Shown piece after piece: positions 10,421-13,427 of a stretch of DNA of 64,000 bases. Source of the stretch: Diadema antillarum. Lineage: Eukaryota. The translations under genes were made by a program, and so were the position numbers. The stretch lies in assembly GCF_040938485.1 (NCBI RefSeq), contig NW_027271922.1, forward strand, positions 186,001 to 250,000, read 5' to 3'. The notes beneath the pieces are model-generated. The model made no database searches and was not told the origin of the DNA. It saw only the letters and a program-made list of their open reading frames with translations. Numbering within the stretch: position 1 is the first letter of the stretch; the number at the start of each line of letters is the position of its first letter.

Positions 10421-13400
10421 ATACAGATATTGACTGGTACGGGGTGGAATATTATACAGATATTGACTTGCCCGAGGTGGAATATAACATTTGAAATGCT
10501 CGCGGGAATTATATTTTTGTCGAGGATTATTATATTTTTCCGAAGCGCGTAGCGCTGAGGAAAAATATAGTATTCCGAGACAAAAATATAATTCCCCAAG
10601 AGAATGAAAATGTTATATTGCTACCCAAGGAAAAAGTCAATATCTGTTATATCATATGACCTTCACCTTCAAAGAATAAAGGGTTGTAAAAAGCGAATAC
10701 GAAGCGACTGTCGGGGTTCCGAGCCAGCCCACGCGGCCTGTACGCGCGTAACGCGCAGTAAGTCAGTGAATGCGCAATCGAGCAGGCCACACATCATATA
10801 AAGTGTAACTTGAATCTGCAATGTATCAAACATCGTTTAGCTTGCTTGGAAAGAGAGCATCAAGAGATAACTCTACCTGATCGATGAACAGGCTCTGTCC
10901 TCCACCATCGTTCCGGAAAAGTAAAGTAAGTAAGATCTAACACGTTACACCTGAGCTCAGATCTAGGGCCTATAAAGTATACTAATGCAAACCAATGTGA
11001 CAAAAAAAAAATGCAGAAAAATGTACAGAAAATACTTGTGAAAACTTACCATTGGCATTGTAGCTTATGCAGATTGCTGATAGACCTATTGATCATCAGT
11101 GTCAGAATACTCGTAACTCAGATGTTAAGAAATCCAACAAGTTTTGCAACGTTTTTCAGCTGGTAAACAAACACTCCAAACGCAGTAGAAGTTTCTGTAA
11201 ATCCAAATTCCAATGTCAACTTTGCGATGACCGTCGCAGTAAGGTGAAATCTAAGTAGGAAAATAGTCCACTTGAAGTTGACGTCAATTAAATTCCAACT
11301 CCACAGTGAAAAAATCGAATTGTAACGTTAATATGAACAGTTGAAACAGGAAAATGCTGATCTGACCACCGTCAAGTAGACCATCAACGTTATGTAACAG
11401 TTAGAAGCATAGCGTTGGGATGTGTAGGCCTACAGCTAACGAATAAGTCTCTGTAATTATTAATGCAGACCTAATGTAACGTTAGATGATAGATCTAACA
11501 GTTCTGTAACTTCGATCTAACAACGTCAGATCTAACCTTAGATCTAACGTTAGACATATAATATAGGTCTGTCTAGACCTAGATTGACCACCGATATTTT
11601 GTCATGACCCTATAAACGTTAATTGTAAAAGTTTACCGTACAATGATAAAAATTGCACTGCCGCTTCTTGTCTAAGGCGAGCTTGTTTGACAGAACATTA
11701 ATTTGTGGGGATGACTGAGTCTGACTCTGCTGAGATTGAGAGCTCTGCGACAAAGCAGTCTCTTCTGCATGTTGTAACGGTACTGATACGAGAGCTGTTG
11801 ATCCTTGTCCCGCGCTAGTAGTAGACAGTGTAGAACTAGAACTAGGCTTAGGAGGAATTACAGTAGTCGAAGGTTCCTCATCACTTACTGATGAAAGGCA
11901 TCTACTCATCCGTCTTTTTTTTTTTTTTTTTTTTTTTTTTTGCTTCATCGACGTAGGCATAGTGTTTGATGCTACTTTCGGACTTGTGTCCGGATACTGA
12001 CATAATGTGTCTGGCCTCGAATCCACTGGCGTCTAGGACACGAATCGATGTTGCGCGTAGGCAGTGATTCGTGTATATTGTTTATGTTTGTGCTTCAAGG
12101 GATATTTTCCTCATTTTGTCACCCAAAGTGTTCTTACCGACGGGAGCATTGCAGTACCACACTTGCTCGTCACTTTCCACGTTCACTTTTGGACGTTGAA
12201 AAAAAAATCGTCATTAGCTGGATTGAGATGGGAAACATAAACTTGAAATGCTTCAACTGGACAGTCTGGTTTGTGGGTTTCATACATTCTTCCTTGCTGA
12301 CTATGGGAGTCATCCAGTGATTCTCCACGATGATTTTTATTCAGTTTGTCACTAGCAAGGTAAACGTATCTCTCATTTGTTGAATCAGTCGCGATGTCAA
12401 AATCTGTTTATGAAAAATTGCGTAAGTTTTCTCTACCGCGATTGCAAAGGTGCAACATAATGTCAACGAACACTTTCTTCTGAAGGCCTCTGGGAGTACT
12501 CACATCCAGTGCTGATGACGATTTGATTTTCAACATGTCCTCCTGTGTAATAGGATCTTTGTGCACCACAGATCCTTTGCCTTCCTTCTTTAGTTTAACG
12601 AGAATTGCATGAAACATTTCATTTGCCTCCTTGAATTGAGGGTCATTTACAACATCGAAAGCACTCACTTTCTTGAAATGTCTCTGTAGTCCATATCGCA
12701 GAGTTATCATCGATCTCTTACTGTAGAATTCCCCATTCGATCTGCGAACTTCAGCGTAAAATGAACGGAGAAACTTATTCAGTTCTTGCGCTGTTATCGT
12801 CTCGGAAATGCTTAATCCTTTGGCTTCTGTGTAAGCTTTCAATATATTCTCCGCTAAGTTGATGACTCTTTTAGTAGATTTGGAGTCTTTTTCATCTATT
12901 AATTGCTCCAGATCATCCTCTCCAAGAGATGCGAAACGATTTGTCGAACACGCCATTTTGGCGAAAACAAATGTAACTAACGTTAGTTAGGTCCCTATTG
13001 CAATTTCATATTTCGCGCTACGCGCTTACGCGCTTATTACATTGTACATTATACTATATAGTAATGTGCATGTTACTGTATGGTAAGTTGCAAAGCATCT
13101 GCGCGAGAGCAGACGTTTGTTTTTGATTCTATTGTTTACGTCACTTCTCGTGATATAACGCGCCTGTTGTTTACATACGGGGTTATATTTCATGATTGTA
13201 CGTAATTTACGTCATGTTTTGGAAATATAACGCTTCTCATCCTCGTAACCCTGGTCACGTGACAGCATTTTGACCAATCCCGCATTGGTATCTATATAGG
13301 TCATAACATTCTTTGGACCGCCAGGAGTTATATTATCCCAAGGGAAAATATGATCACGAGGGAAAATATAACTCCCTGGCGTTCCAAAGATTGTTACATT

Positions 13401-13427
13401 CCACCCCCTACCAGTCGATATCTGTTA
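10421..13427 (-). mobile_element. Crypton-type (tyrosine recombinase) DNA transposon, element A, ~3.0 kb
   Basis: ~30-bp inverted termini ATACAGATATTGACTGGTACGGGGTGGAAT (10421-10450) and ATTCCACCCCCTACCAGTCGATATCTGTTA (13398-13427), TA-rich flanks, subterminal hairpins, and an internal disrupted YR gene. Confidence 0.8.
11619..12956 (-). pseudogene. Disrupted Crypton/KCTD1-like (DUF3504-type) tyrosine recombinase gene
   Basis: ORF 12956-12408 (FYAEVRRSNGEFYS...DPQFKEAN...HLCNRGRENLR) continues past a TAA at 12408-12410 as TDFDIATDSTNERYVYLASDKLNKNHRG...MYETHKPDCPV. After a frameshift in the A-run at 12199-12207 it reads QRPK...WYCNAPVGKNTLGDKM; a second TAA is at 12082-12084, then YTNHCLRAT...SGHKSESSIKHY. 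A frameshift at the T-run 11915-11941 leads to the Ser-rich tail ending CNFYHCTVNFYN*. Confidence 0.88.

Follow-up and report, generated by a model that had tools for sequence, protein, structure and literature searches.

A decayed CryptonA-like transposon nested in the terminal palindrome of a sister-family Crypton in Diadema antillarum

To our knowledge Cryptons are the least understood class among the eukaryotic DNA transposons. Those of animals are said to have no detectable terminal repeats and no conserved structural features (PMC3212892, PMC12130899, PMC13465315). An earlier note on a 64,000-nucleotide stretch of the Diadema antillarum genome (the window; contig NW_027271922.1, positions 186,001 to 250,000) had described a full-length Crypton with true inverted ends at window positions 10421-13427. 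The question that this locus raises is which of its DNA belongs to the transposon, where the element truly ends, and what the inverted repeats around it are.

The ORF list contains a 182-aa ORF at 12408-12956 on the minus strand plus an out-of-frame tail. These had been proposed to read through as one protein, and a three-frame reading of 12956-11622 indeed gave a single collinear protein. The broken tyrosine-recombinase gene (11622-12956, minus strand) carries the complete catalytic set that had been claimed for it: CNRGRE, NKNH, HCLR (12066-12055), SGH and the tyrosine of IKHY (11961-11959) were all located as the earlier note had read them. The proposed search for intact copies yielded an open paralogue elsewhere in the genome (L002:2708-4018:-) that encodes 437 aa, is ~98% identical to the window gene in aligned bases and is the single ORF of at least 80 aa in its copy. 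As the short broken pieces of the window gene alone gave sub-threshold Pfam matches (QRICH1, 1.7e-8; DUF3504, 1.2e-4; Phage_integrase, 3e-3), the domain and structure tests used this natural paralogue rather than a repaired window sequence. Failure against YR/DUF3504 profiles had been named as grounds for giving up the Crypton reading; the L002 protein passed the Pfam cut-offs of both DUF3504 (1.4e-10, 41.9 bits, cut-off 29.7) and QRICH1 (4.2e-8, 33.7 bits, cut-off 30.8), and matched Phage_integrase (3e-4) under the cut-off. The Pfam hits were limited to these three, with no RT, DDE transposase or other mobility gene. Residues R173, K207, H297, R300, H323 and Y332 (L002 numbering) are invariant or at least 90% conserved in 35 homologues, and a structure search with an AF2 model gave QRICH1 (9hjt_H) as the best match, followed by Cre, XerA, IntI, Tn1549 Int and lambda Int over 320-370 columns. 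The assignment of the element as a Crypton-type tyrosine-recombinase transposon related to DUF3504/QRICH1 (CryptonA-like) with a complete catalytic set is thus supported, and the predicted product of its single intronless gene is a two-domain Cre-like tyrosine recombinase.

Lesions were called against the same open paralogue, and the two stops and two homopolymer frameshifts reported earlier were seen again. Along the minus strand they are an in-frame TAA stop at 12408-12410 (Lys in the open paralogue), a T9 run at 12199-12207 (A9 on the plus strand) with two extra bases that shift the frame, a further TAA stop at 12082-12084 that falls in the shifted frame (Ser in the open paralogue), and an A27 run at 11915-11941 (T27 on the plus strand), the 19 extra bases of which shift the frame a second time and bring the original one back. 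Comparison with L002 gave 18 substitutions in 1305 aligned bases, and also three in-frame indels in the tail. Two of the four lesions lie in homopolymer runs, where assemblies err, and the length of the A/T27 run, at which the read contigs break, rests on the assembly. Nevertheless, we consider it very unlikely that the copy is truly intact and that errors of assembly, or of long reads in homopolymers, account for its stops and frameshifts. Both stops are substitutions, and the first is present in contigs of run X1, which have no listed difference at this site (X2 and X3 have a sense codon there). An ungapped contig from the independent run X2, which comes from a different study than X1 under the same organism label, spans the T9 run, and the X2 contig that spans the second stop has no difference there (X3 and X6, the latter from organism B, read otherwise). 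Moreover, the right terminus is truncated regardless of how these runs are read.

The extent of the element was established by blastn comparison of the flanks of related copies. The inner element (10449-13305), whose gene lies on the minus strand, is a dead member of family A, an autonomous Crypton of ~2.89 kb when complete, and is collinear with C1373 (94% by blast counting gaps, 97-98.6% in aligned bases). Boundaries 10449 and 13305, where homology begins and ceases, are common to ~20 independent family A copies. The outer ends at 10421 and 13427 proposed earlier are shared by no other copy, a result that had been named in advance as telling against them. In the 19 independent copies having both ends the order is flank, ATATTATACAG...GGTCATATAATAT, flank, such that the left end reads ATAT followed by TATACAG... 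and the right end reads ...CATATAATAT, and the flanks share no duplication beyond ATAT. The ATAT of the left junction (10449-10452, plus strand), a putative crossover microhomology, departs from this sequence in 7 of 20 independent insertions. The right-end ATAT is unchanged in all 19 copies compared, and paralogues of the DNA into which the window copy inserted (below) have a single ATAT(A); hence, the left ATAT behaves as target-derived. The right terminus of the window copy (13292-13305, plus strand) stops at ...TATAGGTCATA, whereas the 19 other copies end ...GGTCATATAATAT. The final 7 nt, terminal ATAT included, are absent and GGTCATA stands directly against host ACATTC. Given this truncation the ends of the window copy are not intact, as had been believed of both. 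The right subterminal region (13132-13305, plus strand) is common to non-autonomous derivatives and carries two AATATAAC motifs.

The true family A termini have an AT-rich 8-9 nt as their sole mutual symmetry. There are neither terminal inverted repeats common to all copies nor a DDE gene, the marks of a TIR/DDE transposon, and the ends are those of a Crypton: without TIRs or LTRs, with a short ATAT repeat and with no real target-site duplication. The lack of TIRs is to be read with the caveat that the element does have a subterminal palindrome and, internally, a second, inverted version of its right end. One open paralogue, 97-98.6% identical in aligned bases, was found together with many non-autonomous derivatives, which supports the earlier proposal that the window copy descends from an autonomous family, and one that is young. 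As decayed copies go the window element is ordinary; it is by chance that it displays the cis-structure clearly. An Rfam search of 9000-16000 gave no match, none of the RNA runs searched for the window stretch contains it, and the window has an N run at about 9660-9930.

Four Crypton families of this genome (A-D) follow one layout with sequences that differ between families. All four carry a palindrome of 150-240 bp at their gene-distal end, which is the downstream one. The opposite terminus recurs in inverted orientation (R') beside that palindrome, and the insertion site is ATAT. The palindromes are imperfect (75-87% self-complementary). That of family A, ~190 bp at 10456-10647 with its best arm cores at 10504-10548 and 10552-10596, has a self reverse match of 77% and folds as ssDNA at -56 kcal/mol (z = -13), and nine of its arm positions are changed on both sides (compensated) relative to family B. 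Directly inside it is the R' site (10648-10662, plus strand), the reverse complement of which, AGGTCATAT..., resembles the right end ...TAGGTCATATAATAT. When A, B and C elements were counted, all 18 AATATAAC motifs lay within the terminal 300 nt.

Such palindromes look like foldback MITEs, and in the window Crypton ends themselves serve as insertion targets, which would fit independent foldback/MITE insertions near Crypton ends that are no part of the transposons. We find this very unlikely, since in every copy of the four families the palindrome begins exactly at the family boundary, its sequence differs between families, and the opposite terminus co-varies with the sequence adjoining the palindrome. 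In addition, among relatives on marine metagenome contigs, which provided the cross-species comparison, 16 of 31 loci have a palindrome on the downstream side of the gene, as against 2 of 28 on the upstream side. At the threshold applied, roughly half of the eligible loci of this set had none. Exact R/R' matches of 21-24 nt were present at -262 to -294 in three of the relatives, and the exact-match R/R' search was negative in several metagenome loci (L074, L097, L127 and L135).

With the palindromes taken as parts of the Cryptons, the inverted repeats that had been read as the ends of the window element can be assigned. The 28-nt repeat (10423-10450 and 13398-13425) is real and 93% complementary, and the ACAGATATTGAC motif occurs in both of its arms and also begins the element proper. 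However, in seven uninterrupted host paralogues, which read GGTGGA[ATATA]ACATTC, nothing but ATATA lies at the insertion point and the two halves of a terminal palindrome adjoin. The two arms belong to these halves, of a host Crypton that the window copy split. The earlier claim of true inverted ends was thus correct as to the existence of the repeat and mistaken as to the element that owns it. A single Crypton spanning 10421-13427, with true terminal inverted repeats of 28 bp at its ends, is extremely unlikely: neither 10421-10448 nor 13306-13427 ever accompanies the inner element in other copies, and that reading is refuted by the boundaries of the ~20 copies and by the seven paralogous empty sites, where the palindrome is contiguous.

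The host is an older, non-autonomous Crypton of sister family B (10416-10448 plus 13306-14841), and the family A copy inserted at ATAT inside a AATATAAC motif of the host terminal palindrome. The host left terminus (10416-10448, plus strand), to the left of which is a (TA)n microsatellite, is the outer part of arm 1 of that palindrome and contains the left arm of the 28-nt repeat. The remainder of the palindrome, with the right arm of the repeat, and the host R' site occupy 13306-13441 (plus strand), with ATATTAGATGGCC within 13426-13439, the R' site being the reverse complement of the host right end GCCATCTAATAT. The host body and right terminus (13442-14841, minus strand) end with this sequence at 14830-14841, beside (AT)n. 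This segment has 160 matches in the genome and contains recombinase remnants at 14284-14219 and 14067-13990, which gave weak but collinear tblastn matches, including HLCNRGE. The autonomous partner of family B has an open 465-aa frame, in L024. The search for empty sites that had been advised succeeded in part: the seven host copies are paralogous empty sites with one ATAT(A) each, and no allelic one was found; apart from the window itself the right flank matches only C4, an 87% paralogue with homology that begins at 14977, outside both elements. The read contigs include joints that leave out 10450-13303; the sides of these are just 20-23 nt long, and at that length paralogous host copies explain them. 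The nesting shows where Cryptons insert.

The names of public homologues agree with a recombinase of the DUF3504, ZMYM/QRICH1/KIAA1958 lineage. A domesticated Crypton, in which the ORF would be a host gene like ZMYM2, KIAA1958 or QRICH1 and not part of a transposon, is nevertheless extremely unlikely. In its favour are the name of the closest public protein, a Diadema 'zinc finger MYM-type protein 2-like' (99% identity), and QRICH1 as the best structural match. Against it, the catalytic residues are all kept, whereas most are absent from DUF3504 in domesticated genes (Kojima & Jurka, PMC3212892). The gene is intronless, multi-copy (at least 97 genomic matches, of which many have open frames) and located at unrelated genomic sites, with defined ends and non-autonomous derivatives, and Pfam found neither MYM zinc fingers nor any further host domain in the L002 protein.

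We return to the nested Crypton, and hold it highly probable that a CryptonA-like copy of ~2.9 kb, now dead, entered an ATAT in the palindrome of a sister family and then decayed through the two stops, the two homopolymer frameshifts and the loss of the right-end 7 nt. In the proposed mechanism the recombinase would excise the element as a circle, which would join AT-rich targets by strand exchange within a 4-nt ATAT that the target has in common with the joined ends. The predicted joint of right and left ends in the circle would read ...GGTCATATA-ATAT-TATACAG..., with its ATAT in the middle of a perfect 12-bp palindrome, TATAATATTATA. Candidate cis-acting parts are the gene-distal palindrome, R' and the AATATAAC motifs confined to both subterminal regions; given that R' lies beside the palindrome, the joint in the circle would lie inside one arm of a longer palindrome. 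No head-to-tail (circle or tandem) joint of family A was found in the assembly at up to two mismatches, and no circle or excision product was observed among the assembled read contigs, the sole form of the read data; head-to-tail joints between different Crypton families are present. A symmetric crossover that left heteroduplex in both products would not lead one to expect a variable left ATAT together with a constant right one.

A possible reading, which we put forward tentatively and with more doubt than confidence, is that the palindrome across the joined ends, with the mirrored R' and AATATAAC, is the actual CryptonA recombination site, possibly in the form of an extruded cruciform or folded hairpin, in the manner of integron attC or CTX-phage attP. 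If so, resident Crypton ends and AATATAAC motifs would be preferred pseudo-sites, and this would explain both the nesting and the head-to-tail joints.

The Diadema elements share with the CryptonA elements of animals a single intronless DUF3504-related tyrosine-recombinase gene in 2-3 kb, true ends free of terminal inverted repeats and of long direct ones, and non-autonomous derivatives far more numerous than autonomous copies. An echinoderm host is likewise shared: CryptonA-2_SP of Strongylocentrotus purpuratus is 2263 bp long (Kojima & Jurka 2011, PMC3212892), and CryptonA-1_OL of medaka has non-autonomous derivatives (PMC3212892). Terminal repeats of animal Cryptons were not found, being given as 'n.d.' in Additional file 1 (PMC3212892), whereas the Diadema ends are defined to the base with ATAT at both junctions, and these elements have the palindrome at one end, R' beside it and subterminal AATATAAC. 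In the Goodwin model of fungal Cryptons the 4-6 bp end repeats are likewise target microhomology and not a true duplication, and a circular intermediate is proposed (PMC3212892, PMC13465315). The fungal elements differ in belonging to another recombinase group (CryptonF with a GCR1_C domain), and a terminal palindrome is not described for them in PMC3212892 or PMC13465315.

DIRS1-type elements are also integrated by a tyrosine recombinase and have an internal segment complementary to the joined outer ends, so that a long palindrome lies around or near the joint of the circle. However, DIRS are retroelements with RT and RNase H and have repeats at both termini with the joint at the dyad centre, whereas the Diadema Crypton lacks RT and has a palindrome at one end only, with the predicted joint ~100 bp off-centre, inside one arm. 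With Cre/loxP, lambda Int/attP and Tn1549/Tn916 it shares the two-domain fold, the R-K-H-R-H-Y active site and, as predicted for Diadema at the ATAT of the circle joint, crossover in a short overlap. Members of the Tn916 family have a circular intermediate and AT-rich targets. The Phage_integrase score below the Pfam cut-off gives the Diadema protein no sequence-level membership of that group; its host is a eukaryote, and its accessory DNA is a long palindrome plus repeated 8-mers rather than known arm-type sites. The likeness to integron attC and CTX-phage attP, both folded single-strand hairpin substrates, is no more than an analogy: a long imperfect hairpin-forming sequence that contains, or in Diadema may contain, the recombination site.

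Domains of human ZMYM2-4, QRICH1, KIAA1958 and KCTD1 arose from Cryptons. Transposon genes of the Crypton kind carry 'ZMYM2-like' names in public annotation, and nested Cryptons can mimic terminal inverted repeats, two warnings that this locus provides. It also supplies materials for tests of mobility, namely base-exact ends, a paralogous empty site, an open member ~2% diverged and abundant short non-autonomous partners, together with a layout that the families have in common: a palindrome, the mirrored opposite terminus, 8-mer motifs and the ATAT crossover. If the palindrome is indeed the recombination site, this would be the first time that cis-requirements of an animal Crypton are defined.

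Two Crypton families, called A and B here, are superimposed in the window. An earlier note had read a single Crypton at 10421-13427 with true inverted ends. Those boundaries were not borne out: colinearity between the window and contig C1373, which carries another copy of family A, is restricted to 10449-13305, and this copy and 19 insertions that retain both ends and differ in their flanks bound the family at those positions. The insertions begin with ATATTATACAGATATTGAC and end with GGTCATATAATAT, each abutting flanking DNA. The right-hand ATAT is constant (19 of 19 insertions), whereas the left-hand ATAT differs in 7 of 20 (GTAT, ATAA, ATAG, CTAT, TATT, CCAA), and A is the first base beyond the right end in 15 of 19. 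Nor are both ends intact, as had been supposed, for the window copy lacks the final 7 nt of the family at its right junction (GGTCATA/ACATTC). Dozens of ~1.28-kb elements have their first 254 bp (10449-10702) and last 174 bp (13132-13305) in common with the window copy and are non-autonomous derivatives of family A.

The sequence at 13306-14841 is part of family B, a second repeat family with many copies. Seven of these have the equivalent of 10419-10448, five bases and then the equivalent of 13306 onward (...GGTGGA[ATATA]ACATTCTTTGG...); they represent paralogous empty sites. The 28-nt arms at 10423-10450 and 13398-13425, formerly taken as the element's ends, are a real inverted repeat but lie outside the family A boundaries and so are not its ends; they are halves of the family B terminal palindrome, split by the inner element. 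Weak but collinear recombinase remnants of the host lie on the minus strand at 14284-14219 and 14067-13990 (the latter including HLCNRGE), its right end GCCATCTAATAT (14830-14841) adjoins an (AT)n tract, and an autonomous family B partner, locus L024, has an open 465-aa frame and the same terminal motifs. The window therefore contains a nested pair: a non-autonomous Crypton of family B sits in an (AT)n microsatellite, and a family A Crypton has inserted into its left arm. The copies do not bear out a reading of the two elements as joined head to tail. The insertion point falls within a AATATAAC-type motif of the host (GGAATAT^AACATT). Inside the host, between the recombinase remnants and the right subterminal region, a (GT)n tract leads into a run of ~35-40 G residues (14514-14560). 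Joints skipping 10450-13303 were present in all four public sequencing runs consulted (X1, X2, X3 and X6), but we rejected them as evidence for an empty allele because their sides are only 20-23 nt and other family B copies explain them.

The first ~200 bp of family A form an imperfect palindrome (single-stranded DNA fold -56 kcal/mol, z = -13), and directly inside it sits an inverted copy of the right terminus, here called R'. In the non-autonomous copies the reverse complement of this internal copy is AGGTCATATAATATAACAGATATTGAC; the joined ends of family A would read AGGTCATATAATATTATACAGATATTGAC. Family B shows the same relation in its own sequence, with ATATTAGATGGCC internal and GCCATCTAATAT at the far end. 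Upon self-comparison of 18 loci of the genome's other Crypton families, nearly all had a palindrome of 130-240 bp located 260-1000 bp downstream of the gene (77 bp in L020), and in 7 loci an inverted repeat of 20-36 nt pairs the inner edge of the palindrome with a site ~290 bp upstream of the start codon. Comparison of copies of families C and D, two further families of this genome, placed the left boundary at the palindrome start and the right boundary at the upstream site. The right ends of families A and B, GGTCATATAATAT and GCCATCTAATAT, are joined by those of C (TGCTATTTTATAT) and D (CCTATTTACTAT), and in each family the internal copy tracks that family's own right end. Between A and B (essentially one split) nine palindrome positions are altered on both arms; these paired changes show that palindrome symmetry is maintained but not the reason for it. 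The 8-mer AATATAAC is present 8 times in elements of family A, 7 times in those of B and 3 times in those of C, and each of these 18 sites is within the terminal 300 nt; 9 of its 12 occurrences across the 64-kb window are in the ends of the two Cryptons. A 10-nt palindromic motif, CTAACGTTAG (at most one mismatch), was found 11 times in the window versus 1.3 expected. Ten of these are inside the two Cryptons, clustered either side of the recombinase gene or remnants, with sites at 11476-11553, 12977-12986, 13655-13796 and 14115-14124; families A and B may share the motif as a promoter, a terminator or a site for protein binding.

A scan of metagenome contigs gave 80 Crypton-like loci of 32-52% protein identity. 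Where 1.2 kb or more of flank was available, palindromes of 100 bp or longer within 1.2 kb of the gene were seen downstream in 16 of 31 loci versus 2 of 28 upstream (Fisher p = 2e-4, some loci being of the same family and thus not all independent). Three loci (L073, L075 and L086) have, at 262-294 bp upstream of the gene, 21-24 nt that match the gene-side palindrome flank exactly in inverted orientation; controls reached 8-9 nt at most.

Empty sites carry a single ATAT(A), integrated copies carry ATAT at both junctions, and the target is AT-rich (ATAT-A). Excision would give a circle with the joint ...CATATA-ATAT-TATACAG..., its ATAT forming the center of a perfect 12-bp palindrome, TATAATATTATA. 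The circle joint would then exchange strands with ATAT in the target, and the palindrome, R' and the AATATAAC motifs may be accessory or binding DNA. A simple symmetric crossover does not account for a variable left ATAT versus a constant right ATAT. Head-to-tail joints between different families are found in the right flanks of L060 and L065 and, from family C to D, in L028, and would be the expected product of a circle recombining with the end of a resident element; no circle was seen, and a search of the assembly for a head-to-tail joint of family A with itself found none. To the left of the family D copy in L028, as in L060 and L065, one element's right end abuts another's ATAT-led left end. 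Two family C copies lie head to head at their right ends in L019:2285-3525, oriented as in the self-comparison of loci, giving a 1.3-kb palindrome.

The open reading frame list gives the family A gene as a 182-aa frame (12408-12956, minus strand) plus an out-of-frame 135-aa tail. Three-frame translation of the minus strand upheld the earlier proposal of one protein, collinear across two frame changes and two stops: the reading switches frame at a T run and then at a long A run, passes through two TAA codons, and contains CNRGRE, NKNH, HCLR (12066-12055), SGH and IKHY (Y at 11961-11959) where they had been placed. A DNA search of the genome yielded a second copy on contig C1373 with an uninterrupted 437-codon frame (L002:2708-4018:-), and this natural open paralogue served as reference. 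Over 1305 aligned bases the window gene carries 18 substitutions relative to it; it also has 2 additional bases in a T9 run (plus strand 12199-12207), 19 more in the A run (length as assembled; plus-strand T27, 11915-11941), minus-strand TAA codons at 12408-12410 and 12082-12084, and three in-frame indels in the low-complexity tail. Aligned-base identity is 97.0-98.6% across all four element segments, and therefore the two copies separated recently. We checked the lesions against assembled contigs of the four runs. At the first stop no difference from the window is listed for X1 (organism A), and X2 (same organism label, different study) has a sense codon at 12410. An ungapped X2 contig spans the T run, with no difference from the window at the second stop, which is absent from X3 and X6 (organism B). 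Hence, there is some independent support for three of the four lesions (all except A-run length), of which the first stop seems the youngest.

In Pfam, DUF3504 (1.4e-10) and the QRICH1 domain (4.2e-8) match the open paralogue above cut-off, and Phage_integrase (3e-4) matches it below cut-off. Alignment to 34 echinoderm, mollusc, cnidarian and metagenome homologues shows R173, K207, H297, R300, H323 and Y332 to be invariant or conserved at 90% or more. Its AlphaFold2 model (mean pLDDT 74.8) has QRICH1 as first structural match, followed by Cre, XerA, IntI, Tn1549 integrase, XerH and lambda integrase over 320-370 columns. Given the conserved residues and structural matches, the protein is a Cre-like tyrosine recombinase of two domains, and its active site is complete. 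Residues 424-437 of the L002 protein (window 11622-11663, minus strand) form a conserved C-terminal motif with the consensus FNFxNCxVNxxN, in which the Cys is conserved at 90% or more. The motif comes after a disordered linker rich in Ser and Gln and is modeled as a small beta-hairpin. Animal Cryptons are said to lack a C-terminal domain (Kojima & Jurka, PMC3212892). By analogy to the C-terminal helix of Cre, the motif might work in trans. The genome has at least 97 matches to the protein among 909 first-look candidates, many with open frames of 440-500 aa and 38-61% identity. The closest public protein, from Diadema setosum, is 99% identical and annotated 'zinc finger MYM-type protein 2-like'. 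The names 'ZMYM2-like', 'KIAA1958-like' or 'KCTD1_15' are given publicly to Crypton recombinases of Diadema, scallop, coral and mussel that are multi-copy and catalytically complete (P0001 and other homologues); transposon genes are thus annotated as host genes in public databases.

Beyond the host lies a ~425-bp repeat (about 15062-15487) that shares 97-99% identity with at least 38 further copies and is absent from an 87% paralogous region on contig C4; it is a very young and very abundant short element. The 6636 first-look candidates refer to the whole 2.5-kb query containing it. Many insertions with identical flanks occur two to three times on different contigs (e.g., L047/L050/L051, L035/L036 and L042/L043). 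The 1.75-Gb assembly seems to include both haplotypes or recent segmental duplicates, and Crypton copy counts are therefore inflated.

No terminal repeats were found for animal Cryptons, and those of the 2263-bp sea urchin CryptonA-2_SP are given as 'n.d.' (Kojima & Jurka 2011, PMC3212892). Papers of 2025 and 2026 still present Cryptons as devoid of conserved structural features or give no description of repeats (PMC12130899, PMC13465315), and a full-text literature search, with Repbase entries outside its scope, returned nothing relevant on palindromic or subterminal features of Cryptons. The element in the window is genuine but ordinary, a decayed copy belonging to a transposon type already known, and the earlier note was right about its gene and wrong about its ends. 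The value of the locus is that the nested insertion, together with the many copies, defines the ends and the target of Cryptons and a conserved terminal layout that is directly testable.
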